Assembly (NCBI GenBank): GCA_009103225.1
Contig: RHPI01000575.1
Coordinates: 1-23,281 of the forward strand
Source of the DNA: Chlorokybus atmophyticus
Lineage: Eukaryota; Plantae; Mesostigma and Chlorokybus algae
Direction of reading: 5' to 3'
DNA: 23,281 nt
Shown: piece by piece, positions 84-23,281 of the stretch
How positions within the stretch are numbered: the first letter of the stretch is position 1
Layout: the number at the start of each line of letters is the position of its first letter
Notes under the pieces: model-generated
The model's database searches: none
Told to the model about the DNA's origin: nothing
What the model saw: the letters and a program-made list of their open reading frames with translations, nothing else
Program-made: the position numbers and the translations under genes

Positions 84-299
84 GATAAGCAATGCTATCT
101 GAAGGTGGCCATGTGTATCATAGCAATGCGCAAGTGCGCATGTATGCATGTACGTGCGCCTATGCGCGTGTCTATGTGTCTCGATGATGATGTATCATAG
201 TGTACATGACTCGGAGTGCAGCTCTTGACTGTCGTTACAATACCTACAGGAATTACATGTCTAGTACATTGCAACTAGCTTCATGCTAAAGGTGCACCC

Positions 300-972
300 T
301 TGCACAGTATAACCGAGTTGCATGTGCGCATATGTAGCATATATGACGGAGTTGTTGCTATTAGCGACATCGATGAGGATGATTGCATACAAGATGAGTG
401 GGATCCTGCAATGCCAGCATTGGCAATAGACCCTTTGTCCCCACCAGAGGCATACATTGACGTCATTCCACAAGTGAAACGCACTGTTGAAGTCATACCT
501 GCTGAACAACAATGCAGCGACATTCGCTCCGTATATGTGGAGCTGTCACAGGTGACAAACGGTTTGGAAGAATGTCCCACCTCAGCAATGCAATGGGCAG
601 AGCAACTACGCGCAGACACTTTGGATGCGGACAACTTTGTGGCAGCTTCTTTGCAGCAGCGGATAACCGCTTGGGCCACCTGGTTGCGACTGACCATGCA
701 AGGCAAGAAGAGCATTGTGCTGGATTGGTTGCGTGACGGGTATCGCTTACAATGGGTAGGCACTCAAGCATCTGATACACGCAAGTGGGACGAAGTGCAA
801 GCACTGTTGAAGGGCGAAGGCTTTAGAGATAATGATATTACAGCCATGCTGTCACGCAATTCTCCAACACCAGTTGTGTTTCGAAATCGCAAGTCCGCTT
901 CCATACATGGCAGTTATGTTGTCAGTGAATTGGCCAACTTGGTGAAAACAGGAGCAATTTCTGTTGTTAATT
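300..972 (+). CDS. N-terminal part of the DIRS pol protein (pre-RT region and RT start), one base out of frame with the rest
   Basis: FVAASLQQRITAW...VLDWLRDGYRLQW...FRNRKSA...VVSELANLVKTGAISVV matches the typical DIRS RT N-terminus (W..GY.l.f...N..Sa...ei..Ll..GAI). The homology continues in the frame of ORF 964-2646. Confidence 0.8.
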
Positions 973-2646
973 GCCAGCGATGTGGCAGTAGTCATTGGCA
1001 TAGGTGTGGTGGAACAAGAAAAGCGTTTGAGGCTCATTATGGACCTGAGATACATCAACCTCTTTTTGCGCCACATTCCCTTCAGCTATGAGCGGTTGCG
1101 CGATGTGTTGTTATACACCAAGCGTCATTTCTGGCAAGTTACCGCAGATCTCAAGTCAGGCTATCATCATGTGCCCATTCACAAAGACAGTAAGCCTTAC
1201 TTGGCTCTGCGCTTTGCTGGGGTCACCTACAGGTGGAATGTACTGCCGTTTGGCCTGAATCAAGCCTGCTGGCTGTTTACAACCTTGATGTCGACTGTGT
1301 TCACGCCTTTGCGGGCAATGGGTTTTCCCTGCCTTGCTTATATTGACGACATGCACTTCAGCCATTCCGATCGTTGGCATTTGTGTTGGCGCATTCGCCG
1401 CGTGCTGCGTCTTTGGAAGTTGCTTGGGATATTTGTCTCTGTGAAGAAAAGCCAATTGTGGCCAGTGCAAGTTGTGCAGTTGTTGGGTCTGCTGGTGGAC
1501 ACGGTCACTGGCTCTTTTGTCATACCCGCCAACAAGCTGGCTAAGATATTGCAGTTAATGAAAGACATCACGCACGCGCCTGTACTGACCAAGCGTCACT
1601 TCGCACGCATTGCTGGCAAACTCATTGCGTTGAAGCTCGCATTTGCACCTGCAAGCATTTATGCTCGCCACCTGATGGGTCTGGCATTGGCCACAGATGC
1701 ATGGGATGACAGCATCGGTGATTTGAGCGCCTTCAGACACTTTTGTGATTGGACTGCTGCGGGCTTGCAGACCTACAATGGCAATGCTTGGTGGAAGCCC
1801 CCTGTGCAGCTTGAGCTACATGTGGATGCATCCGGTACAATTGGTTGGGGGGCGACAGGACCTTGGCCTCGCATGGCAGGCAACTTCAAGCCTGAGCATA
1901 TGACACTGCCTTCAGCGGTTAAGGAGGCACTAGCCTATGTGCAAGCATTTACCGAGGTTGCGCGCGCGTTTCATCTCCAGCACTGTACAGTGCGCATTAT
2001 TGGCGATTGTCAACCAGCTATACAGATGTTGAACAAGCTGTCTGCATCAGACCCTCACGTGCTGCAGGCCTTACATCAATTGTGGTCCTTGTGCTGGGAG
2101 CGTGACATAGCGCTGACATGTGTGTGGCGCTCTCGCGATGCGCTGCGCGATGCGGACGCATTGTCCAAGTTTGTGGATAGAGGGGACTGGTGTCTAACAG
2201 CAGATGCAACTGCGCATGTGCAGCAACATGTTGGACAACCGGCGTTGGATTGTTTTGCAGCCGATTGGAACAGCAAAACACCCGCTTATTTCAGCTACAT
2301 ACACATGCCTGGAAGTTTGGGAAATGCTCTAACTACAAATTGGCGTGACGTTCTTCAACGCTTGGGTGGCGGCTTTGTTTGGTGTCACCCGCCATTGGCT
2401 CTCCTGCATGAAGCCATAGCATTATTGCAGTACTATCAGCTACCAGCTGTGGTGTTGGTGCCTGAATGGCACTCTGCTGTGTGGTGGCCAGTATTTCACA
2501 ATTGGCAATTCAGTTATTTTGAGAGGTTGGGCTCAAGACCTGAGTGGTTTCAAAGGGGTGCGCGAGTACCCGCAAACAGCATCAACCCTGGACGCTACCC
2601 ATACATTTGTGCTTTTGTGCACTGGGTAAGCATACCTCTCATGTAG
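964..2646 (+). CDS. DIRS reverse transcriptase - RNase H - N6-adenine methyltransferase-like (MT) polyprotein
   Basis: RT motifs: RLIMDLRYIN, DLKSGYHHV, WNVLPFGL, YIDD. RNase H: HVDASG..GWGA, EALA, GDCQPA, ADALSK. DIRS MT domain: LDCFAADWNSK, VWCHPP, LVPEW..AVWWP. Confidence 0.93.
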   Translation: MLIASDVAVVIGIGVVEQEKRLRLIMDLRYINLFLRHIPFSYERLRDVLLYTKRHFWQVTADLKSGYHHVPIHKDSKPYLALRFAGVTYRWNVLPFGLNQACWLFTTLMSTVFTPLRAMGFPCLAYIDDMHFSHSDRWHLCWRIRRVLRLWKLLGIFVSVKKSQLWPVQVVQLLGLLVDTVTGSFVIPANKLAKILQLMKDITHAPVLTKRHFARIAGKLIALKLAFAPASIYARHLMGLALATDAWDDSIGDLSAFRHFCDWTAAGLQTYNGNAWWKPPVQLELHVDASGTIGWGATGPWPRMAGNFKPEHMTLPSAVKEALAYVQAFTEVARAFHLQHCTVRIIGDCQPAIQMLNKLSASDPHVLQALHQLWSLCWERDIALTCVWRSRDALRDADALSKFVDRGDWCLTADATAHVQQHVGQPALDCFAADWNSKTPAYFSYIHMPGSLGNALTTNWRDVLQRLGGGFVWCHPPLALLHEAIALLQYYQLPAVVLVPEWHSAVWWPVFHNWQFSYFERLGSRPEWFQRGARVPANSINPGRYPYICAFVHWVSIPLM

Positions 2647-3771
2647 ATAACGATGCATGATAACAGGACTTCTCCATGTGCCTTGAGCTTGTATTTCTTC
2701 CAGGGTGACACCGGCATGAAAGGCACTCTGTGCAGCACCACGCCGAAAGGAATGCAACCCCAGGTGCGGCCTATAAATGCCACATGCCTTGCAGCAACGC
2801 ACGAAGGCATGATAAGCACAATTGCCTGACATGCAGTGTTCTTCCCACTTCAACCTATTCTTTGCAACAGGTCGGAATAAAGGACCAGCAGTGATGGCAA
2901 AGGAGCTGTTGCGACAATAGGTCAGATAGGCGTAGAGCACTTCAGAGAACTCCACAGGGAGACCACTGCTGCGCACTTGTATAGTAGGTGCACCTCCCGT
3001 GCTGTAATTTTTCAGATGTGTTAAAGTGGCCGCTAGCCCTGAGCTTGAATCAGCCGCTTGTATCTCGTGCATTTGTAAACGCGCACCTTCACCACCCCGT
3101 TGCCATGTGCACCACAGGTATATGCATAATGTGTAGTCGCGCCAGAGCACAGCCTTGTCATGTGTGACAGTAGATGGCTGAGGTATGGTAGACAGCTGTT
3201 GCTGGAAGTGGTAGATCAGCGTGCGCATGTCATCCATCGCCAGTGGTACAGCAGCAATAGGTTGCACGCCTTGCCGAGCAGCAATCTTCGCATACCCTTG
3301 GCGAAACTCGCGCACGTCTATGGACAGAAGCGGGTTGCCGACAGACCTGTCGCTGTCCCAAGGGCTGATGCGTCCCAGCAATCTGAAGGAGCATGTGAGA
3401 TGGGAAATGACATTGTCCAGTGTCGTGCTAGCGATCATGCGATGGCCATGGCGGTCAAGCCTGCGAGCTTTGCCAATGTGTGTGTCGGTCCAGTGCCCAG
3501 CAAGGTAGCTTGTGACGACTGCTGGGGTGACGTTGGCAACAGCAATACTCAGCTCAGGATGTTGCAGATAGTTGACAAACTCTTGCCACACGCGATCACG
3601 TTGATTGCGAGTCTCATCGCAGACAGCTTCACGGCTGATGCGCTCCACGTCTATCAGCGCTGCCGCAGCTCGCTCACGCAGATTACAACTGGTTATTGGT
3701 TGAGGACGAATTGCTGCGCGTGCGGTGCGTTGCACATCAGCGGTTTGCTGCAACCGCTGTGCAAAATCCAT
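2533..3771 (-). CDS. Tyrosine recombinase of the DIRS element
   Basis: Catalytic set R (WQRGGE), K (HLKN), HxxR (HSFRRG), W (GTWRS), Y (MHRY). ATG at 3771 directly follows an acceptor-like tccgcag; the ORF is open to 3792. Confidence 0.93.
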   Translation of the reverse strand: MDFAQRLQQTADVQRTARAAIRPQPITSCNLRERAAAALIDVERISREAVCDETRNQRDRVWQEFVNYLQHPELSIAVANVTPAVVTSYLAGHWTDTHIGKARRLDRHGHRMIASTTLDNVISHLTCSFRLLGRISPWDSDRSVGNPLLSIDVREFRQGYAKIAARQGVQPIAAVPLAMDDMRTLIYHFQQQLSTIPQPSTVTHDKAVLWRDYTLCIYLWCTWQRGGEGARLQMHEIQAADSSSGLAATLTHLKNYSTGGAPTIQVRSSGLPVEFSEVLYAYLTYCRNSSFAITAGPLFRPVAKNRLKWEEHCMSGNCAYHAFVRCCKACGIYRPHLGLHSFRRGAAQSAFHAGVTLEEIQAQGTWRSPVIMHRYLHERYAYPVHKSTNVWVASRVDAVCGYSRTPLKPLRS

Positions 3772-3901
3772 CTGCGGACACAGAGAAACCATTACTCAAC
3801 TACTAAACACAATGACCTTGACTGTAACTTTGGCAAGAAACTATACCAAGCTCTACACCTATAACCCTTACCTACTAATGTATGCTTGGGAGGGTGCGGT
3901 A

Positions 3902-4066
3902 GAATGTTTGATGCATCTACAGTTGTTCATCGTGTAAACCACAACTATAACGATGAATGCGTTGCATCGTAGGGCTTAGGTGTTCTTGCCAAAGTTGGAC
4001 TGTAGGTAGGATTGTTGTTTGCGACAAAAGGAATGTAAATCGCTCATCGTGTGCAAAGTAGTATAA
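3902..4066 (+). repeat. 165-bp direct repeat, copy 1 (B1 of split direct repeat)
   Basis: gaatgtttgatgcatc...gcaaagtagtataa, identical to 4481-4645. Confidence 0.95.
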
Positions 4067-4480
4067 TGGTCATTACTTGTTGAGGCTGACTATTGGTCAG
4101 CTAGATTGAAATAACAAACTGTTAACCATTTAATTAGTACTAGTTGTTAGCGCTAGGGTTAATTGACACACACACGTGTCAACTTACTGTTCAGTCGCGG
4201 CCGTCACCTCAGCGGCGTCGCTGGCGGCGGCGCTGACGGCCGAAAGTTCGCCCTTCCCGCCCCACCCTGTTGCGCCACTGCGCCGGACACATGCGCCCAG
4301 TCTCGATTGCGCTGGTCAGTGCGTACGCAATTGGTCATCAAACTGAGCTGATTGTGAATCCGAATGCGTTCATGACATGTAACGAAGATTCGGGTCATGT
4401 GAACAGCGTTTATCACCGTACGTTGGTGTCGTCACATCGACGATGATACGCGTCATTATCAACCACCGTCGGTTCGTCCC

Positions 4481-4645
4481 GAATGTTTGATGCATCTACA
4501 GTTGTTCATCGTGTAAACCACAACTATAACGATGAATGCGTTGCATCGTAGGGCTTAGGTGTTCTTGCCAAAGTTGGACTGTAGGTAGGATTGTTGTTTG
4601 CGACAAAAGGAATGTAAATCGCTCATCGTGTGCAAAGTAGTATAA
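4481..4645 (+). repeat. 165-bp direct repeat, copy 2 (B2, probable right terminus of the DIRS element)
   Basis: Identical to 3902-4066; flanks diverge on both sides. Confidence 0.95.
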
Positions 4646-4886
4646 CGACCAAAACCCAACGCTCACGGGGAGGCATTTGCCGTACCGGTGCTTATTGTCC
4701 CGGTGTGCTGCCCGACCGCGCCCATTACTATGATCGCAGCGTGCGACCCAGCGGTCGACGTCACATGCTAACACATCGATCAGGCGGCCACTATAGCGTC
4801 GCGCACCCTTCTCTGTGCTCACAGCGCGGTGAGGCAGCGGTCGAAATCCCTAACATTATAAACAGCGTTTTGTCAATTTGTATGAA

Positions 4887-4918: not shown

Positions 4919-5648
4919 AAAAGGACATATATTGTTGGCATGTATGGTGTGTCTATCTGGTTTGATCGCACGCATGTGCAAACCTCATGGAATGTTGAGT
5001 TTAATTGTTATTATAGATTTATCCATAATGCAATAGAGTATGAGACAATTTCAATACATTGACACCATGAATGATCTACATACTACGTCGCAAATTTTAC
5101 ACGGTGACTGACTAAGGACTGAGGGACTGACTGGTGCCTGAGCCTGCCTGAGCCTGTTTGTTGCTGCCTGAAATATTACTTTTGGACTGTTGGGTTTGCC
5201 GTTGGCTTAAGTGGACTGACGCAGACGGCCGCGGGCCGAAAGTGGTTGTTAGTGGCACTAACCGGCCGAGAGTTGTCAACCAGTTACCCTTTGGTCGATG
5301 TGCACAGACGGCCGTTGACCGGTAGTTACGGACAGCTGACAGCAATAGCCGGCAGTTTCTTTGCCGTTACACTGCTGTTAATATGTGACCCTTGCCGTTT
5401 GACAAAAGTTGGCAATTCTTGCCGTAAGCCAACACTAACATGCCATGCAGCTTGTACAAACCTTGGACTGATTGTTTGGTCTTGCACCTAAAAGCCCACA
5501 ATATATACAATGTACGGGCAGTGGTGAGAGTATGTCCACTTACAACTGAGCAGCCGACTTGCGCATGAAACTATCCTATAACATTGAGTCTAGCTGTCGG
5601 ACTCATGCGCAGCTTGTCAACCCGTGGTGCCTGCTTCAGAACTCCTCC

Positions 5649-6494: not shown

Positions 6495-6667
6495 GGAATT
6501 CATCCCGGACCTCGACCACAATGCCCACTACGCCCCTGGCAGCGCCGCCAACGATCTTCCAAACGCCACATACCCTCGGCATCACGCCCCTGTAAGGGCA
6601 TAGCTTGGCGGAGCTATCAATGGTGTTTTCATGCGCAGGGGGACTGACATTGCCAGAGTTGTCAATG

Positions 6668-6860
6668 GTACGAACTGCCATTGCCATTGTACAAAGGTAC
6701 CATTTCAATGGTCCTTTGTACAATGCCTATACCTTTTGGCAAAGGCATCTCCGTACCATTGAAACGGTTCAATCAGAATATATATGTATATAAAATATCC
6801 AGAGACTCACCCTGGACGTGCAATGGCTCGATCGTACCATTATAATGGTACGACGGAGCC
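6668..6860. promoter_or_regulatory. Divergent promoter region with 7 GTAC cores and two hairpins
   Basis: GTAC at 6668, 6689, 6697, 6718, 6753, 6834, 6848. Near-perfect hairpin 6685-6725. Perfect palindrome TCGTACCATTATAATGGTACGA at 6832-6853. Lies between divergent genes. Confidence 0.55.
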
Positions 6861-7013
6861 AGTGACTGGCGGCCAAGTTTCCCGCCTCTGGCATGCAAGG
6901 GTAGCGGTAGCGGTGGCGGTGGCGGCGGCGGCGGCGGCGGCGGCGGGTGTGCGTGTTGCTGGATATGATGCAGGTTACATTGGCGACACCTGTGTCGACG
7001 TTAGTAGTGAGAT

Positions 7014-10000
7014 ATGGGAGTCCTTTGTCCGTATTGCCACATGCGCTTCGCCACACGCAGCTCGGTCTACATGCACATTATTAGCAGCAGGGTGTGCAAG
7101 CAGATCAAGCTGTATGTCGGCCAGCGTCCATTACAGTACGATGCGGGTCATGTTGAACCGGGGAGTTCGATCCAGGATGCTCACATGCTTGATGCTGAAG
7201 GATTCCTCCAGGAGACACACGCACAACAGCAACAGGAGGAGGAGGAAGTGAACGAGGGCTTTCGATGTGTGCGTGTGCCTGAGAAACCTGTGGCACGCCA
7301 ACATGAAAGTGGAGGCGTCCCTTCGCACGCGTCGGAATCCAGGTGGTATGGCTCGGAGCATGCTCTTGCAATGGCATTCGTGCAATGCAACAACGGCCAA
7401 GGCCTGTCGGCCTCCGACATGGGGCGGATCATCAAGTGCATCCGAAATGCACACTTCCTGACGGAAGAGCTCCAGTGGGAGACCGGTGTGCATGCGGCCA
7501 GCTACCTCCGGACCACGATTGCTTTCTCTCAGTCTGAGGTATGTTTACGGTGTGCGGTGCATGTGCTTCAACCATCAGAGCCATGTCACATTTGCACATG
7601 CGAGTGTGCTGCCGTATCAGAACTACGTGACGGCTGACCTGCGCAAGCCTGGAGACCCTGAGGATCAGGACATCTGCGTCACATATATGCCGGCCAAGGT
7701 CTGTGAAATGCAGTACCTAATGCAGTATCGATGCAGTATCTATTCTGAGGCCAGCATAGTAAGTAATGCTCTTGGTCGGAGCAGGTATGGCTCGCGCGGT
7801 TGTATGGCAATCCACATGCCGCCAATGGCTTCAATCTCCAGTACACTGGTGACGAGCACAGCTTTGGCCATGGCCTTCCACGGGCGATTGGTGGAAGGAT
7901 GTGGAGGTGGATTTAAGGAGAGAGGTGGGGGAAGCGTCCTACTTGGCGCCTGCCATTCTGTACAGTGACAAGACCACGCTGGACAGCGCGGGCAAGCGCT
8001 CTGGCTACCCTCTGATGGCATCGCTTGCCAACTACAGTTGGGACATGTATGCTAGCAACATGGGGGTTGTTATGATAGCGCTTCTGCCGGTGTTTCACGC
8101 AGTGGCCGGGCATCCCACCTGGGCGCAGGGCAAGAAATCGTTCTCCATTCGGAAACGTGAGATTTTTCATGACGCTTTGAATGTAGTGTTAGGGGATGTG
8201 AAGCGGGCGAGTTGGGAAGGTCTGCAGCTCATCGACCCGAATGGCATCGAGCGTCGTGTGTTTCCCGCGCTTGCCAACTACATCAGCGATTTGCAGGTAG
8301 TGGGCATGAATGGTTGTAACCGGATGCAGCCCGCCAGCAAACAGTGCATGGAGGATGTTGTCAGTAGAACATCTGAGTTTGTCGTGTTGTAGGAGACTGC
8401 CACACTCGCACGCACTGTGTCGGGCAACCAAACACGACATCCTTGCGATGTTTGTCTCGTAACCAAATCAGATCTGTTGGAGATGGATGAGGACCGGGAA
8501 TTGAGAACCGAGGCCTTTTACACACCAGCACTACGTCAGCTGCGGACGGACCTGCATAGCGGTGTTAGGAATGCACGCCAGACAGCCAAGGCTTTCAAAG
8601 AGCAGCACTCCATGCATGTCGAGGAGGTAATGGTCATATTACCGGCATTCGTGAGGATGAATGGCTTTCCGTGAAACCAGGCAATGTGGTTTGGCAACAG
8701 AATGCACTGTGGGGTTGGCGACAGTCGCGGGTGCCGGGAGCTGACTGCTACTCTCGTCTTGCCCCTGACGCAATGCATGTGCTGGGAGGCATCATTGACC
8801 ACCTGCTTGCTGCTGTGTACGACGCCGCGAAGGAACCAATGCGTCCATCCACGAGACAGATTCTGCAGGCCAGGCACGTCTTTGGTGTTGCTTTTGTGTT
8901 GAACACAAAAGCCAACAACATGTGCTCACGAGCAGATGTGCACAGGCTGAATGCATGCAAGGCGACTCTGCGGGTTTCGCACTTCAAGGCACCCGCAAGC
9001 ACAATAGATTTCTTCCTGTCCGACCACTCCTTTTAGGTGGTGGAGAAAGTGGCGGTGCTGCAGCTGCTGCCGGTCCTCACAGACGGTTTGCTGCTCGACA
9101 GTGAGGGCAACGATTTCTTCACCATTGCTGCCGCATCGCTTGCCCAGTGGAACAAGAAGTTGCTGAAGGCGCATGAACACACAAGAGAGACCATGACCAC
9201 AGCCGACGACGAGCTGGCTGCCTTCAAAGCTGCAGTGTTGCATCCGCTACTGTCGTCATATTCTGCACAGAAGTCAGGTTGGAAGATCGAGAAGATGCAT
9301 CAGCTCACTCATTTTGGGCCGGCAATTGTTAGCAGTGGACACCCAGATTGGTTCAGCGCCAACCGCATGGAGCAGACGCACGCTCAAAATATCAAACGGT
9401 GGGCGCGTGGTGGCAACAACCGGGACTATCAGGCACGTATCCTAAAGGCATGGAGCTGTGCGAAATATGTGAGAGATGATGGCATGGTCGTGGATCCCGA
9501 GATGCGCTCGGTCACGGTGCAGGCGCGGCAGCAGTGCTGTAATGTCATGGAGAAGACGGACAAGTTGCTACGGATGGATGTGCTGACAAGGAGGGAGTCC
9601 AGCCCGTACTGGAGCGGATCTGCGCGTAGCCGCCAAGTCGCCTTGAAGACTCCATTTGCCGACAAGCTGCCTGCCACCCTGGACAGCTGGTTGAGGAGGG
9701 AACAACTGGAGTTGGCCGACGGGTGGCGTGCTGTTCGCGTGGTGAACGGAGGCGCAGCGGTGTACATGACATCAGGAGTCAGCATGGCGCGCGCAACTGG
9801 GATGTTCCATGGGCGGCCTTGGTTCTCTACACTTGAGTTGGAAGGTGATGAGGACGGTGTGAACGTGACGTGGTGGGCTCAGGCACTCCTTTTTCTGCGC
9901 GTGGTGGTGTGGGGTGGTAGCGGCGAGCGCGTGTGGAAGGAGGTCGTGTTTGTCCGCTGGTACACGAAGCTGGATGTGACGAGCGACACAAAGTGCATCG

Positions 10001-10158
10001 CTCCGGAATGGGAAAAGCGTCGAGGCGGTCCACATCTCGATGTCGTGACTCTGGAGCAAGTAAAAGGTATTGTCCAGCTGCTCCCCATGTTTGACAAGGA
10101 CAGCGCCCGTGTACAAGAGGGCAAGTATTGGGTGAACGTTCACTGCACTTCCACGTGA
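7014..10158 (+). pseudogene. Plavaka-family (CMC/CACTA-related) transposase, spliced, with one frameshift and one nonsense codon
   Basis: Exons 7014-7538, 7621-7698, 7785-8296, 8393-8626, 8701-10158 (a further intron near 8874-8935 is possible). Motifs: PSTGDWW, ILYSDKT, YPLMASLAN, IFHDAL, RRVFPALANYISDLQ/E, CDVC, PDAMH, KMHQLTH, NRMEQTH, ATGMFHGRPWFS. Frameshift at 7872-7873; in-frame TAG at 9034-9036. Confidence 0.85.
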
Positions 10159-10361: not shown

Positions 10362-11624
10362 TCAAGCCTCATAGTTCCATGACACAGGAGGGTAGTCACA
10401 GCGCATATCCATTGTTTCAAGCATGAGACGCCCTATGCACTCCGCCATTGCGGGAGGAACTGCATTCGCTATGGAAACGGCCAAGGTCATCCATGGCACT
10501 CCCAGCGCTGTTTGCCACGCAGCAATGCCGCCCCTGGTGCTTGGAAGACCATAGACCGGGTACATCTGCTGTGGCGCGTTTGATGTCACGATTGTCTTCT
10601 TCGCGCTAGCGGACAGGTGCGGCGATAGCAGTCCAACTGCCTTGCCCGCGTGCGAGCAGCGTGCTGGTGGGGTAGCTACCACTGGCTGTGTCTCAAACAG
10701 ACGGTGTCGGAAAGTTGATAGGCCAAACATCGTGCCACAAAGGGACAGATTGGGTCTGAATGAGGAAGCTGCTCCTGGCACATTCTCAATCACAAACTTG
10801 ACCTGGCTTGCAAGCAGCAGACGTCGGACGAGCGGTATCATATCCTGGTGTCTCCAGGATGTGCCATGTGCCGCCCGTTAAGGTGCCGGGATAGCACCTG
10901 AATAGGCCTGGCATGGTGGACTGGCCCAGATGAGCTCGTACTCGCTCAGCTCTCCTGCACTCAGGGTGCATACATCGCGGTGTATGAAGGGCAGCGGGTA
11001 CTCAGAGGAGGAACTTATGTCCATCCCGGTCACGTCAAAGCCTGCGTGGTATAGACCGATACTAGCACCGCCACCGCCGCAGAATAGGTCGAGTGCCCTT
11101 GGTCTGCGTGTGCGTCCCAGCTTGTTGTCAAATGGCGTGTATGTGGTCAAGGCTGGCCGTGGTGCTGGCCAGGGACTAACAATGATGCCGTCCGGGCTTA
11201 TTTTGCGACTGACGTTCTCCCCTCCGGCACGCAGATTATGGCGTGCCCCGTCAACTGATGTGTACGCGAATACGTTGTGCCCTTTGAAGTTGATGGTCTG
11301 TGGTCGAATACCGTCATCGAATACTATACGGTGCTGCCCTGCAAAGACACTTGCCATTGCACCATGCATATATGATGCGTCCTCAATCTCGCACGCCACG
11401 AAGCGATGCTGACCTGACGCTTGCTTGAATGATTCCACAACACCCGCATACCATTCCCCATCCAGCGGCCAATGCACCATGACACTCACACCGATCAGCT
11501 GCTCGCATCCCAACTTAACTGCGTTCCGCAGCCGATGCAGTGCGCTGTCCAACGGTCGATGGTCTGCCTCCTCTACAGCGGCCAGGGGATGGAACTGCCC
11601 ACGCCCACACCGTGCAAGACTGCT
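10362..11624 (-). pseudogene. Tudor-like domain fused to a phage/bacterial-type C5 cytosine DNA methyltransferase, with one in-frame TAA
   Basis: Tudor: IGVSVMVHWPLDGEWYAGVVESFKQASG/QHRIVFDDG after removing the 75-nt intron 11339-11413. C5-MTase motifs: I LDLFCGGGG, II GMDI, IV SPPCQ, VI VIENV, LCGTMFGL, VIII RHRLFET, X IANAVPP. ORFs 10878-11552 and 10362-10841 are in one frame, separated by TAA at 10878-10880. Confidence 0.88.
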
Positions 11625-11715
11625 CTGAATGCGACAACAGCTTCAACATGCATGAAATAAGCATACGCCCAACATAACATGCAGTGATACGTCGCGGTCC
11701 ACTCTTGTGGATTAC

Positions 11716-12089
11716 CTCCACAGCATCCACCACCTGTCCACTAACGACATGTCCTGGTGTTGTCCATGTGAGAAGCGCATGGGTTCCCCTCGCCACTCGA
11801 AGCATGAGCGCGAGCACGATTCGCACACGCACTGCACGCAATGGAAAAACTCGGGTTCCTTGCACAGCACTTGGCCGAGGCGGCAGCCAAACACGTCGAC
11901 ATTGTGTGTGGTGTGATGCCAGCAAGCAGCACTAAAACCGTGGCACACTGTCTGCACTCGCTGGCATTCGGTCAAGTGTGCTCGCATTTGCTGCCTACGG
12001 CCATTGGCACATACGTACGCATTGCATTGTGGGCACACCAAGCATGGTCTCCTAGGTGAGGGTGATTCAACTGCTGCCGCCGACATCAT
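11716..12089 (-). CDS. Cys/His-rich Zn-binding exon(s), probable N-terminus of the Tudor-methyltransferase gene
   Basis: CPQC-x15-H-x3-C followed by further C/H clusters. Strong donor ag|gtaatc at 11715 and acceptor ttcag at 11625. The frame joins the MTase only if an additional intron (e.g. 11734-11828) or an indel is assumed. Confidence 0.5.
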
Positions 12090-16427: not shown

Positions 16428-16680
16428 GACGTGGCGACCGGTAGTAGCTGGCTTCGCTGCTTGAACTCTTACGACCACAACTTCTCGCAAGATGTGCCAC
16501 GCCGCCGCCGCCGCCGCCGCCGCCTCCGACTCCTGGTCCTCCGCCTCCTAGTCGAACCCAGGCCCATTAAGCCTGACATTCGACCCGTCATCGACCTGGT
16601 GCCCCTGCGTGCCATCATCCAACCATTAATGAAGCGTGTTTGGGTGAGTGCATGCTAACTCCCATTTGGGCTGATCGAGC

Positions 16681-16840
16681 AATGCCTCTGTCGTACCAAG
16701 GATGGTACGACAGAGCCATTGTACGGCAATCGCTGGGGTTGGACGAGAGATGCCTCTGTCGTACTATAAATGTTACGACACAACCATTGTTACCAATGGT
16801 TGTACGAAGCATGCATGGCACGAATGCATAAGTCGTACCA
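16681..16840. promoter_or_regulatory. Divergent promoter region with 6 GTAC cores and hairpins
   Basis: GTAC at 16693, 16705, 16721, 16761, 16802, 16835. 18-bp-arm hairpin 16681-16720 (1 mismatch). 9-bp-arm hairpin 16781-16802. Confidence 0.55.
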
Positions 16841-17023
16841 TCAACCATAGGAGCAAGGACGCACTACAAGTGCGACTCTAGTGCGGGACTCTAGACGTTC
16901 AAAACCGCCTCATTTTCGTTTTCGCGCCTCATACATTCGGGCGGGCCAACCGGCGGCGGCAGCGTTGGAGGCGGCAGCGCCACTTACAGCTAAACAGGCG
17001 GCACCCGACTATCAGTTGGAGAG

Positions 17024-18845: not shown

Positions 18846-19278
18846 CGCAGTTGGTAGTCCGTTTAGCTGGTAGTGTACATAGCTACAAGGCTCTTGTGAC
18901 TGAGTGTTGTGCATCTTAAACCAGCTCAGTCAATCGTCATTATGCTCATGCACATCAATACTAGCATCCCTATGATATACAACAGAACTGCATTCGAGTC
19001 ACATAATCGAACTACAAGCCTTGGCAAGTGACTGAGAGACACTGTACACATTCCAGGTACATGTACACAGCACAGGCACATAACAATGCTGGAAGTTAGT
19101 GACAGTCGCGTGTAGTCAAGCTATGCAAATACATATGACGACAGTTAGGCATTGGTCACCTTCAGTTGTTAAAGAATGCCTTATTTTGTCGATAATTACC
19201 TAGTTGGTGCTTGTGAATTAGGCTTAGTCGCCTGCGCTGGACTGGTGTATAACCAGCACGTGCCTGCCACATAGGCTG

Positions 19279-19507
19279 AGTCACCTTAATAAGACTGATG
19301 TGTAACTTACAGGTGCCCGTTGATTAGTTGTAGTCACCTAATAAGGCCTGATGTGTAACTAACAGTTGCCTGTAAATTACACAAAGTCATTTGTTAAGGC
19401 CTGGTGTGTGACTAACAGGTGCCTGTTAATTATGTAAAGTCACCTGTTAAGAATTAATAGGTAACTATCAGGCGCCTGTTAGTTAGGCATAGTCAACTGT
19501 TAAAGAC
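19279..19507 (+). repeat. Degenerate 53-bp tandem repeat, about 4.3 copies
   Basis: Units start AGTCA(C/T/A) at 19279, 19332, 19385, 19438, 19491 and share the core gtgtaact.acaggtgcc.gtt. Confidence 0.85.
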
Positions 19508-19940: not shown

Positions 19941-19958
19941 GGGGGGGNNNGGGGGGGG
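19941..19958. other. Poly-G tract containing 3 N (assembly uncertainty)
   Basis: G7-NNN-G8; N at 19948-19950. Confidence 0.95.
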
Positions 19959-20733: not shown

Positions 20734-21193
20734 CAGTCCACCCCCGCTAAAAGACTTTGCTCCAAGAGAATAACCTCGCTTGTAGCATACAATTTTGGAT
20801 CACCAACGATGCTACAGGCAACTGTTAGTGCTTAAGAGAATATGACTAACCGCGAAGAGCATATTATTTTTCATGACATTTTTGCAAATATAAGTGGGCA
20901 TATTCTTATCATTGAGGGAGTAGCGCATGGTGTGTTATCAGGCGTAATGAGTGTGACAGACAAGGCGTGATGGGGACAATGTCACGCGTAATTAACGTAA
21001 TGAGCGTGATGGCATAATACGTGACGTAATGCGCGTGATGTAATGGGTGTGATGGGCGTATTAAACCGCTTTATAGCATACAGATGCTCTTAATGTTCAA
21101 GAGCATATTATGCTCTTTATCGCCAAGAGCATAACCCCGCCACGAGCAAACTATCTTGAAAATAAACAGCATGCTCTTAAAAGGGGTAGATTG
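20734..21193. mobile_element. MITE-like element 1, CAGT-starting TIR, TA flanks (Tc1/mariner-like)
   Basis: TA|CAGTCCACCCC ... GGGGTAGATTG|TA (9/11 inverted match). Internal AAGAGCA/TGCTCTT and CGT(G/A)ATG motif arrays; non-coding. Confidence 0.65.
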
Positions 21194-21247
21194 TACAATA
21201 AATGTTTTAATGTAATTAGGTACGTACCACTATGTACCTTAACTGTA

Positions 21248-21678
21248 CAGTCTACCTCCGCTATAAAAATCACATGTATCTTTCAGCGTTCATTCCATCA
21301 ACGGGGTTATTCTCTTGGCGTTTATAATAATATATACTCTTTTACTTCTTACATAATATATATTTTACTAACAGGGGTTTCGCAAAATAACCGTAAGCCA
21401 CGTTATGTTTTAACGTGGCATAAATTGAATTGATAATTGTCAACACTAAATTAATTATGTACGTAACTATATATGAGTTTTGCAATATGTTTATGCTTAT
21501 AATATAAAAATAACATGCCATTAACGAGGTATTCCCCCGTAACAAGACTGAGCTCACACAAAATTTTAACCCTCCGTTGTAGTCTTATAGCGTACAAAAC
21601 TATTCCACTAATCGATGATGTTTGCCTGTAAAACCATTGTATTCTCATAAACCGAAGTCTTTCAATGGGGGTAGACTA
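21248..21678. mobile_element. MITE-like element 2, same TIR family
   Basis: TA|CAGTCTACCTCCGCTA ... AAGTCTTTCAATGGGGGTAGACTA|TA; the right end inverted matches the left end of element 1 (gtcyacccccnntraaagactt). AT-rich interior. Confidence 0.65.
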
Positions 21679-21680
21679 TA

Positions 21681-21814
21681 TAGTCTACCCTTTTGTAAGA
21701 GCATACTGTTATCCTCAAAATTCGTATGCTCTTGGCGACTAAGAGCATCATATGCTCTTGAACGTTAAGAGCATATACATGCTATAAGCGCAGATTCATT
21801 ACGCCCATCACGCC
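21681..21814 (-). mobile_element. Partial inverted copy of the right end of MITE 1
   Basis: Reverse complement aligns with about 21046-21193 (atgctcttaa.gttcaagagcata..atgctctt..tcgccaagagcata). It shares the TA at 21679-21680 with element 2, creating the palindrome 21669-21690. Confidence 0.7.
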
Positions 21815-23243
21815 TATTGGTCGGGCCGGCCGGCCTGTCGGCATTCAACCTACATCACACATCCCGCGCGAGGGCCATCACACGGCACCCGCGACTGCCG
21901 GGCTGCGCGGCAGTATGTGCGACCCGCCTGCTTCTCATTGGCTAGGAGGCGAGAACAAGCGTTACACCGTTAGATCTGCCTAAACACGATCCTGACCGTC
22001 TAAAGCACATCCAATTGTTCAAGCGCATGCCAATAAATGTAAAATATTTTACATTTATTGGCAGCACAGTTCTGCATGTTGATCATTTCAATGTGTTACA
22101 TCAATAATATTGATAAATATGTTGCAATATGGTGCAATATGGCTAGCAGCCTGCAGTTAAGTGTTACAACTCAATCTACCATAACGTTCAAGCCACGGTA
22201 TGTGCTGCAAAATATAGTGAGTAATGCCAAGCTTACAAACATAAACATAATGCTAACCTGAATTACCTTAACGTTAAGATTCAACCAAACGAAAAATTGC
22301 ATTGTTAGGCCACCATTTGGTCACACATGAATTTGATCAAATGGGATCGCAACGGTGACAACAGCCGTTGCTCAAAAAAGCAGAATAGTGGCCAATCATT
22401 GCACAGATGCATAAAAGATACTGAAAACAATCTCGGCGGCAACTGCTAGCTAACGGCAACCCAAAATCGCTAGCGATTTGGTGCAATTGCAGCACAGTTA
22501 GTGGTCAAAACGGCCGCGTTTTTGGCGGTACGAGGTCGGGGCAGGCCCCATACCCCAAAGACGTGCCGCCACTACTCACCCTCGTTCTAACTAATCCACT
22601 TTACCATGTAACGCTAATTGATTACACGCTATAGTTACTGCGTCATTAAACATGGTCAACAGCCGAATAAGGCCATAGCGGACGGTAGGGTAAGTGTACC
22701 ATAGTTCGGACACCTAATTAAGGACAGGTTTTGTTCTATGACCTCCATGGCTGTTGCTGGTGTGCGACGGTGCGTGGGAAGACGAGGAGTTGACGGGTGT
22801 TATAGACGTGACGGCATATTTTTTGGTGCCGTACAGCCATCACTACACAACCTCAAAGTGGGGAGTATGTGATATCCTGGCAAAACGGCTGTTGTCGTAA
22901 GTTCGGACTGCCCAAAATGGCTGCATTTCACCCTGCTGTGGCGGCCAATCGGTGTTGGGCAGGCTTCAGATTGCGCTGGCGTGCTGTGCTGACATGCTGT
23001 GACCCGTCACGACGCTGTCAACGCCGCCGCCATCGCCACTGGTGCGGGCAGCGTCTACCTTGCTGTTGTATGCCGTCCGAACATAGGCGAGGTTGCGGGT
23101 ATGTGCATGCTGGGCGTTGTTGTCGTGGCCGTGGTGGTGGCCGGTGGCGCCTTTGCGCAAGGGTCGTCGCCTGCTGGTAAGCTTGCAGAGATGCGCTTGG
23201 GTGTGTGTTCTGAACCTGTTTGCCTGCGTGAGAGTGCTGCGTG

Positions 23244-23245
<2 letters not shown>

Positions 23246-23281
<36 letters not shown>
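23246..23281 (+). repeat. (TG)n microsatellite
   Basis: 18 TG units running to the window end. Confidence 0.97.

Follow-up and report, generated by a model that had tools for sequence, protein, structure and literature searches.

A Tudor-fused, phage-type C5 DNA methyltransferase gene with an in-frame stop codon, next to a Plavaka-type transposase gene in a subtelomere of Chlorokybus atmophyticus

How did a phage-type cytosine methyltransferase come to lie behind a Tudor domain near a chromosome end of an alga, and whose gene is it? The question is raised by a minus-strand gene at positions 12089-10362 of a 23,281-nucleotide stretch of DNA from Chlorokybus atmophyticus (contig RHPI01000575.1, assembly GCA_009103225.1); this whole stretch is referred to below as the window. 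Our favoured reading, which we hold with moderate confidence, is that a ~10-kb Plavaka/EnSpm-type DNA transposon in a transposon-rich subtelomere carries the gene as an accessory (cargo), and that this copy has been inactivated by a nonsense codon. C5 methyltransferases have passed from bacteria and viruses into eukaryotes time and again, and epigenetic enzymes and chromatin readers have been captured repeatedly by mobile elements. The locus joins both trends, in that a minimal phage/giant-virus-type methylase is combined with a plant/alga-type Tudor domain, apparently in a DNA transposon.

The region 12089-10362 on the minus strand is a single reading frame of 576 codons that closes with a TGA (10364-10362) and contains three internal stops (TAA 11714-11712, TGA 11645-11643 and TAA 10880-10878). 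Along this frame lie, in order, a Cys/His-rich N-terminus, a stop-bearing segment, a Tudor domain, a linker of ~55 aa and a compact C5 DNA methyltransferase. The parts of the gene are as follows.

11716..12089, minus strand: candidate exon 1, starting with the ATG at 12089, defined from the open reading frame (ORF) and its frame; Cys/His-rich N-terminal region of 124 aa
11620..11715, minus strand: candidate intron 1, 96 nt, GTAATC...GAGCAG, read from the sequence
11256..11516, minus strand: RDM15/PDS5/MSH6-type Tudor domain, with candidate intron 2 inside it (phmmer against PDB 7DE9_A)
11339..11413, minus strand: candidate intron 2, 75 nt, GTCAGC...TTTGCAG, in frame and stop-free, inside the Tudor domain
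10881..11132, minus strand: methyltransferase N half (Pfam PF00145, 21.5 bits; phrog_363, E 3e-19; 55-63% identity to ~300 small methylases)
10878..10880, minus strand: TAA in coding sequence between motifs IV and VI (conserved flanks, gap-free alignment)
10365..10877, minus strand: methyltransferase C half, ending in the DYPP tail (tblastn to actinophage methylases; phmmer E 2e-28 to the metagenomic relative P0001; alignment)

A single ORF without interruption (11552-10881) covers the Tudor domain together with methylase motifs I-IV, and because both lie within it their fusion needs no splicing. The physical Tudor-methylase fusion is therefore a direct observation, and the original prediction of an MSH6/PDS5-like Tudor in front of the methylase is borne out by a Tudor of the PDS5/RDM15 type. 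The motif strings quoted in that prediction were likewise all found, on the minus strand and where they had been placed. It had also proposed zinc fingers at the N-terminus; the Cys/His richness is real (14 Cys and 8 His in 124 aa), but this region has no family match in Pfam, PHROG or PDB, and zinc binding is a guess from its composition.

The methyltransferase carries the following motifs, all on the minus strand.

11093-11067, minus strand: motif I, LDLFCGGGG (N half)
10925-10908, minus strand: motif IV, ASPPCQ, with the catalytic Cys (N half)
10796-10770, minus strand: FVIENVPGA, with the ENV of motif VI (C half)
10742-10719, minus strand: LCGTMFGL (C half)
10712-10692, minus strand: FRHRLFE, motif VIII (C half)
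10508-10485, minus strand: ALGVPWMT (C half)
10472-10452, minus strand: IANAVPP, motif X (C half)
10445-10431, minus strand: AECIG (C half)

Motifs I, IV, VI, VIII and X follow one another in the canonical C5-methyltransferase order, and the distance of ~72 aa from motif VIII to motif X means that the target-recognition part is very short, just as the earlier description of a compact enzyme had it. Both halves together keep 40 of the 42 family-conserved columns (those at least 85% conserved among 72 relatives), with I changed to V and Y to M in the other two. The N half, at 21.5 bits, falls just below the PF00145 gathering score of 22, and Pfam has no match for the C half. This shortfall reflects the model and not the fold, because the subfamily is divergent: just 84 of 150 relatives match PF00145 at E<=1e-3. 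Compared with the small phage enzymes, the window domain has ~12 extra residues after motif VIII in addition to the C-terminal DYPP tail. An intact version of the domain would be expected to transfer methyl groups to the C5 position of cytosine.

The copy in the window is interrupted within this domain. The catalytic Cys (PCQ) and Glu (ENV) had been described as intact, and both residues are indeed present; they lie, however, on opposite sides of TAA 10880-10878. The alignment runs without a gap through this codon with Mycobacterium phage U2 gp78, Gordonia phage Kamaru gp76 and the closest metagenomic relatives, so that IPAP*RAAHGTSW in the window (the asterisk marks the stop) stands opposite IPAYQRELHGHKW in the relatives, and tblastn homology restarts at the first residue past the stop. 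The stop column is Gln in six of the eight aligned relatives, in agreement with the suggestion that the TAA is an altered Gln codon that could be repaired by TAA>CAA. Introns that would take out this TAA were considered and rejected. The GT-AG candidates measure 46 or 53 nt, neither length divisible by 3, and no frame-keeping GT-AG interval spans the codon; a 63-nt GC-AG intron would delete the conserved AYS of motif IV, and homology is unbroken across the stop. Repeat-induced point mutation (RIP) was also rejected as the cause of decay, the indices of 0.51 and 1.47 showing no RIP signature.

Because the TAA would end translation between the PCQ and ENV motifs, after motif IV, the gene as assembled cannot yield an active methylase. 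If both candidate introns are spliced, the predicted product has ~346 aa and ends after motif IV with the reader kept. The window copy is thus best read as a recently inactivated pseudogene that keeps its reader and has no working catalytic domain. Since the domain is otherwise so well kept at the conserved columns, the break would be recent, polymorphic or an error of the assembly.

Where the catalytic domain comes from can be judged from its relatives. A tblastn search with the C half against phage records gave 308 matches (E 1e-19 to 1e-20), 292 of which cover at least 80% of the query, with E down to 2e-20. The records come mainly from phages of Mycobacterium, Streptomyces, Paenibacillus, Arthrobacter and Gordonia, and the best matches listed are 36-40% identical. 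From motif I to its C-terminus the window domain is collinear with U2 gp78 (223 aa) and Kamaru gp76 (220 aa), and the wider family is that of the ~220-aa phage methylases of phrog_363. From IMG/VR, a scan with a narrow alignment recovered 70 loci, most of them phage-sized. With the C half as query, exhaustive HMMER searching over 1.84 billion representatives returned 1674 relatives at E<=1e-3, none above 50% identity. The similarity is far beyond chance, because the tblastn E values are 1e-19 to 1e-20 and the matches number 1674.

The best HMMER matches are longer proteins with an insert between motifs VIII and IX, which in one group is a methyl-CpG-binding domain (MBD, PF01429). The MBD-insert enzymes are encoded on contigs whose genes are densely packed and intron-less and include hallmarks of giant viruses: topoisomerase II, the small subunit of ribonucleotide reductase and a U-box protein; mRNA triphosphatase, kinases, topoisomerase II and YqaJ; and a D5 primase-helicase. 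A member of the neighbouring insert-bearing clade (P0005) lies on a 245-kb contig with Rpb1, including an intein, and PolB. In a maximum-likelihood tree of 73 sequences the window domain falls in a 14-row clade together with all MBD-insert enzymes (ultrafast bootstrap 95, SH-like approximate likelihood ratio test 88). Inside this clade its placement has support of only 86/0, and it stands on a long end branch (1.06; median 0.43). The other half of the tree is occupied by the actinophage enzymes.

Two groups therefore invite comparison with the window enzyme. The phrog_363 phage enzymes, such as U2 gp78 and Kamaru gp76, are collinear with it over the catalytic domain and share the same motifs, the short target-recognition region and ~36-40% identity, but they stand alone with no reader domain, whereas the window enzyme is Tudor-fused and lies in telomere-bearing eukaryotic DNA. 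The giant-virus MBD-insert enzymes (P0001, P0002, P0007, P0028, P0281, P0286, P0301 and others) are sister to it or nested with it at 42-47% identity, and share with it both a 'C.H....G..SP.L' extension past motif VIII and a C-terminal 'G.T.DYPP..Y' tail. They have a ~100-aa insert with PF01429, sit in intron-less viral arrays and have neither a Tudor domain nor a Cys/His N-terminus. At the insert site the window reads 'SPHLSASAKKTIVTSNAPQQMYPVYG' where these relatives have ~100 aa with the MBD, and the MBD was either lost or never gained in its lineage.

Among canonical eukaryotic enzymes the domain finds no kin: in the PDB search no DNMT1, DNMT3, DNMT2, DRM or CMT chain appeared at E<=1, the C half matched nothing, and the only C5-methylase match of the N half was M.HaeIII (E 0.14). 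The likeness to small phage DCM enzymes, and not to DNMT1, DNMT3 or CMT, that had been proposed for this gene thus holds at the level of the phrog_363 family; its nearest kin are the giant-virus MBD-insert clade and not the actinophage enzymes. The phylogenetic analysis that had been suggested as a check places the methylase with the giant-virus clade (95/88), and the PDB search sets it apart from the canonical eukaryotic DNA methyltransferases (DNMTs). As best read from these sequences, the catalytic domain derives from the phage-type small Dcm family via a lineage otherwise seen only in giant viruses.

Several arrangements of domains were observed among these relatives. In ten of the MBD-insert proteins (P0001, P0002, P0007, P0028, P0281, P0284, P0286, P0294, P0299 and P0301; loci L003, L004, L011 and L013) the MBD occupies the target-recognition position between motifs VIII and IX. 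An enzyme with the MBD inside the methylase might maintain CpG methylation in a self-templating manner, and no description of a reader-inside-writer MBD layout was found in the literature searched. One viral lineage encodes the same enzyme as two adjacent ORFs (L011 9239-10534 and L012 1064-2359), namely a 260-aa methylase front (P0312) followed by a 144-aa ORF with the MBD and the C-terminal part of the methylase, which may be a split gene or an assembly frameshift. P0099 (L007 1639-2940) has an N-terminal zf-CW domain, a histone H3K4me reader type, fused to an insert-bearing methylase, and P0003 and P0004 (~450 aa) consist of two tandem copies of the small methylase.

The reader half of the gene has different affinities. 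The first half of the Tudor domain (31-40 residues) matches the Arabidopsis RDM15 Tudor, PDB 7DE9_A, by phmmer (E 1.8e-4 and 1.1e-4). This is the best and only significant PDB match of the domain, with the 53BP1 Tudor as a faint echo. After removal of the 75 nt of candidate intron 2, the cage residues W (in HWP), Y (in EWY) and F (in IVFDDG) follow one another at +7 and +18, and this spacing equals the 7 and 18 residues that separate W616, Y623 and Y641 of RDM15 (numbering mapped by spacing from the text of PMC8184781). The RDM15 (PDS5C) Tudor binds H3K4me1, where the Asp643/Asp645 pair is monomethyl-specific and Glu647 contacts H3R2 (PMC8184781). The FDDGIRP segment of the window keeps Asp643, but has Ile in place of Asp645 and Pro in place of Glu647. 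The window domain thus resembles the RDM15/PDS5C and MSH6 Tudors in its aromatic cage (W/Y, with the second Y replaced by F), in Asp643 and in identical spacing; those Tudors, however, sit on cohesin or mismatch-repair proteins, whereas this one sits on a methylase and is split by 75 nt. From these residues a role as a methyl-lysine reader is plausible, and H3K4me1 specificity is not supported, because the residues for the monomethyl and H3R2 contacts (Asp645 and Glu647) are replaced. The domain is not recognised by Pfam. Its second half alone, a query too short to score, has no PDB match, and a single-sequence AlphaFold model of the Tudor piece was unusable (predicted local distance difference test 39).

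The two candidate introns complete the gene model. Candidate intron 1 holds both upstream in-frame stops (TAA 11714-11712 and TGA 11645-11643) and its length is a multiple of 3; taking it out joins the Cys/His region in frame with the Tudor exon. The PDB alignment of the Tudor domain breaks exactly at candidate intron 2, whose removal restores the cage spacing; left in, it puts the spacing off by 25 residues. For the spliced gene of the original prediction there are thus GT-AG candidates of 96 and 75 nt. Both lengths are multiples of 3, and that the two intervals are spliced out is an inference from the sequence; an in-frame insertion of 75 nt and two further nonsense codons are the alternative.

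No second example of the fusion was found. Among the 150 best representatives of this methylase family none has a Tudor or Cys/His region beside the methylase; a query of the Tudor plus the N half (224 aa) gave 315 matches, all over the methylase part only; and neither a profile search over proteins of 187-595 aa nor a scan of the JGI metagenomes yielded a Tudor-fused relative. The spliced Tudor and Cys/His region had no match by tblastn or blastp against 96 loci and 389 family proteins. A search for Tudor-DCM fusions elsewhere had been put forward as a check on the prediction, and it came back empty for representatives, metagenomes and family loci alike, in collections that are poor in spliced eukaryotic genes (10 of 10 window ORFs are absent from the protein collection). 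Missing Tudor-fused relatives are weak evidence because spliced eukaryotic genes are poorly represented there.

What surrounds the gene bears on whose gene it is. It lies ~10-12 kb from a telomere and tail to tail with a transposase gene, with 204 bp between their stops, in the following setting.

1-83: telomere, 13.8 perfect ACCCTA copies, (CCCTAA)n, a TTAGGG-type chromosome end
279-4700: DIRS-like retroelement directly past the telomere, with a reverse transcriptase ORF and a tyrosine-recombinase ORF
6655..6865, no strand assigned: left ATGGTACGA cluster with ~50-nt palindromes, then (GGC)n at 6905-6946; putative left subterminal region
6763..10158, plus strand: Plavaka-type (EnSpm/CACTA-related) transposase gene in several frames/exons (PF18759)
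16500..16850, no strand assigned: right cluster, (GCC)n at 16500-16548, then palindromes and ATGGTACGA at 16668-16841; putative right subterminal region

The transposase is assigned from PF18759 (Plavaka) at 7901-8392, with E 2.8e-19 and 70 bits against a cut-off of 26.3; the domain lies 2 kb upstream, on the strand opposite the methylase gene. Its ORF pieces are joined by in-frame TAGs at 8390-8392 and 9034-9036, the latter lying in 'CTCCTTTTAG|G', which is splice-acceptor-like; these TAGs may be nonsense codons or intron ends. The 9-mer ATGGTACGA occurs 11 times in the window (3.6 expected), and all copies but one lie in two clusters, at 6665-6853 and 16691-16841. The outermost copies of the two clusters are inverted, a palindrome at 6812-6864 matches 16671-16725, and a GGC or GCC run lies on the inner side of each cluster, the right cluster mirroring the order of the left. 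Such a mirrored arrangement is like that of the subterminal regions in an EnSpm/CACTA-type element, here of ~10.2 kb, that would enclose both genes. The DIRS-like element consists of a reverse transcriptase ORF at 964-2646 (RVT_1, E 7.6e-16, with a weak Dam-like region) and, on the opposite strand and overlapping its end, a tyrosine-recombinase ORF at 3792-2533. Taken together, the TTAGGG-type telomere, the Plavaka and DIRS-like elements, the short candidate introns and the PDS5-type Tudor would suit an ochrophyte or another alga and, with a poorer fit, a basidiomycete.

We favour the cargo reading because the Plavaka transposase is only 204 bp away, the motif clusters mirror each other and the setting is that of a telomere with a DIRS-like element. 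The viral kin of the catalytic domain, the recent decay of the gene and the DNA-modifying cargo known from other elements fit this reading, and none of the searches turned up a Tudor-fused relative that would point to a conserved host orthologue. The encoded cargo protein would combine a Cys/His-rich region with a Tudor that reads methyl-lysine and a compact C5 DNA methyltransferase of the orphan kind. In an intact version, the aromatic cage of the Tudor would tether the enzyme to methylated histone tails and the tethered enzyme would methylate nearby cytosines, so that the element might write 5-methylcytosine (5mC) on chromatin of a given state, on or around itself.

Several observations weigh against this reading. 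A scan of this one copy for terminal inverted repeats and target-site duplications returned only simple-repeat pairs, and the enrichment of the 9-mer is modest. The stops of the transposase may be intronic, in which case general decay of the element is not established, and a search limited by protein length found no homologue for the C-terminal part of the transposase. The supplementary files of the Ectocarpus transposon paper, its ORF protein library among them, contain none of the peptide words taken from the methylase, Tudor and transposase of the window. The methylase might also have inserted separately, or belong to the host and simply lie next to the transposase. As element ends, CACTA/TAGTG motifs near 5257 and 16879 were tried and rejected for want of a matching duplication, and a weakly enriched GGACTGA motif is uninformative for the ends. 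Because a single copy is visible and no terminal-repeat/duplication pair can be defined, the boundaries and the cargo status are not proven.

The main rival, which we consider possible though unlikely, is a host-domesticated gene: a laterally acquired methylase with a Tudor reader that the cell uses for chromatin-guided methylation, the transposase being a coincidental neighbour. On that view the TAA would mark a pseudogene of very recent origin, a strain polymorphism or an error of sequencing or assembly. In favour of such a gene, the domain is nearly perfectly kept apart from one codon (40 of 42 conserved columns), but that codon, a TAA, lies in coding sequence and the terminal branch is long. 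The candidate GT-AG introns (96 and 75 nt) suggest that the gene has adapted to a eukaryotic host, and the aromatic cage of the Tudor is intact; yet no orthologue or paralogue of the same architecture was found in 5.8 billion clustered proteins (within length limits), in the 1.84 billion representatives or in the JGI metagenomes. The unproven transposon boundaries leave room for a host gene; the location, ~10 kb from the telomere with a DIRS-like element and a Plavaka transposase around it, speaks against one. The domestication put forward in the original prediction is accordingly doubtful, given a broken catalytic domain and a gene 204 bp from a Plavaka transposase in a ~10-kb block between inverted motif clusters.

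We regard as improbable that the gene is a remnant of an endogenised giant virus whose insertion has otherwise been lost or overwritten by transposons. Endogenised giant-virus DNMTs have been described (PMC11244446, PMC12344493), and all the closest kin of the catalytic domain are encoded on giant-virus-like contigs, but these relatives have neither a Tudor nor a Cys/His N-terminus. The viral contigs compared contain no kin of any other window ORF, no viral hallmark gene was found in the window, and the window gene differs from the viral ones by its candidate introns and by having no MBD insert. Least probable, and close to negligible, is that the TAA is read as sense (through a TAA/TAG=Gln code or programmed read-through) and the gene is intact: the TAA aligns with Gln in most relatives and two in-frame TAGs link long same-frame ORFs of the transposase, but C-to-T nonsense arises only at Gln, Arg or Trp codons and would thus be expected opposite Gln either way, and a TAA/TAG=Gln code, which would scatter those codons through long ORFs, was rejected on window ORFs of 566, 420, 398, 373 and 342 codons that are free of TAA/TAG, some of them ending in TAG or TAA.

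A cargo gene of this type would have parallels in known systems. Plavaka elements carry TET/JBP genes in Agaricomycotina (PMC12730594), and red-algal Plavaka elements carry a three-gene cassette that includes PAG2, an N4/N6 methylase-SET protein (bioRxiv 10.1101/2025.02.11.637652). In Ectocarpus, a Sola1 element has a ParB-methylase and one Gypsy element has a Tudor domain (PMC12477816). Plavaka/EnSpm and KDZ giant transposons share with the putative element of the window one or more extra genes for a DNA-modifying enzyme on the strand opposite a Plavaka transposase and a length of at least ~10 kb (PMC12730594, 10.1101/2025.02.11.637652, PMC12477816). In the portions of these cargo papers available to us, no C5 cytosine methyltransferase or Tudor fusion is reported as cargo, and the termini described for Plavaka/KDZ elements (TGT..ACA or CATCA..TGATG, with 2-3 bp duplications) were not recognised in the window.

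Methyltransferases on other mobile elements are also known. Dinoflagellate and charophyte retrotransposons carry DNMTs, some of them shown to be active, and DNMT-encoding DNA transposons have been noted in marine viruses (PMC5890265); DNMTs associated with viruses or transposons have been given a category of their own, the 'orphan' DNMTs (PMC12344493). The DNMTs of SymbioLINE/SymbioDIRS, of KnitGypsy and of endogenous giant viruses resemble the window enzyme in being non-DNMT1/3/5 C5 methylases tied to a mobile element (PMC5890265, PMC12344493, PMC11244446), but they lie in retrotransposons or viral insertions, whereas the carrier in the window would be a DNA transposon. The Symbiodinium DNMTs, moreover, are mostly without further known domains and the DIRS-borne ones are DNMT3-derived; the window enzyme belongs to the phage/giant-virus clade and is Tudor-fused. 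Tudor-bearing DNMT5b enzymes exist, and an N-terminal Tudor, LBR or MBD is found in those of microalgae (PMC9998398). Like the window gene, DNMT5b has a reader domain in front of a C5 methylase (PMC9998398), but DNMT5 is large, SNF2-coupled and of another catalytic clade, and the window domain has no significant similarity to canonical eukaryotic DNMTs in PDB. The predicted independence from known eukaryotic families is true of the catalytic clade; orphan DNMTs gained by lateral transfer and linked to transposons or viruses have, however, been described before (PMC12344493, PMC5890265), as have Tudor-bearing DNMT5b enzymes (PMC9998398). The locus combines known kinds, namely orphan or transposon-borne DNMTs, reader-DNMT fusions and Plavaka cargo, and is no new category.

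We suggest tentatively, as a proposal that may well prove wrong, that a Plavaka-type transposon family carries its own reader-guided C5 methylase (a Tudor plus a domain of giant-virus ancestry), with intact, active copies elsewhere in the genome that place 5mC at histone-methylation-marked chromatin. If true, this would be the first DNA-transposon-borne C5 DNMT in a cellular genome, with a reader-writer architecture assembled independently of DNMT1, DNMT3 and DNMT5. Intact copies would represent a fourth independent coupling of histone marks to DNA methylation and would offer a very small catalytic module (~250 aa) for studying a reader-directed methylase with almost no target-recognition domain. 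The interest of the locus hinges on such copies in the source genome. For now, the broken copy is of value because it points to the family and to the unusual giant-virus relatives that have an MBD within the enzyme.

Two further ORFs lie inside the putative element.

14901-13708, minus strand: 398-aa ORF, no Pfam or PHROG match even at E 10
13603-12578, minus strand: 342-aa ORF, no Pfam or PHROG match even at E 10

Neither has kin in the giant-virus or phage loci compared. At the start of the 398-aa ORF stands 'PTDGNCLNHCVFRA', similar to the motif that holds the catalytic Cys in OTU-type cysteine proteases, a likeness without Pfam or PHROG support. At the telomere-proximal end, the DIRS-like element has two perfect 165-nt direct repeats (3902-4066 and 4481-4645).

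Dinucleotide bias is strong and uniform over the telomere-proximal 20 kb and weaker in the AT-rich right end; for the whole window the observed/expected ratios are ~1.4-1.5 for TpG/CpA, 0.56-0.8 for TpA, ~0.8 for CpG and 1.2-1.4 for GpC, with no RIP signature. To the right of the putative element, a 53-nt tandem repeat array of ~4-5 copies (19239-19503) is followed by three N (19948-19950) and by a pair of 63-nt inverted repeats that are 89% complementary and lie 591 nt apart within AT-rich sequence (21042-21818), like a small non-autonomous transposon. A (TG)18 run (23246-23281) forms the right edge of the window.

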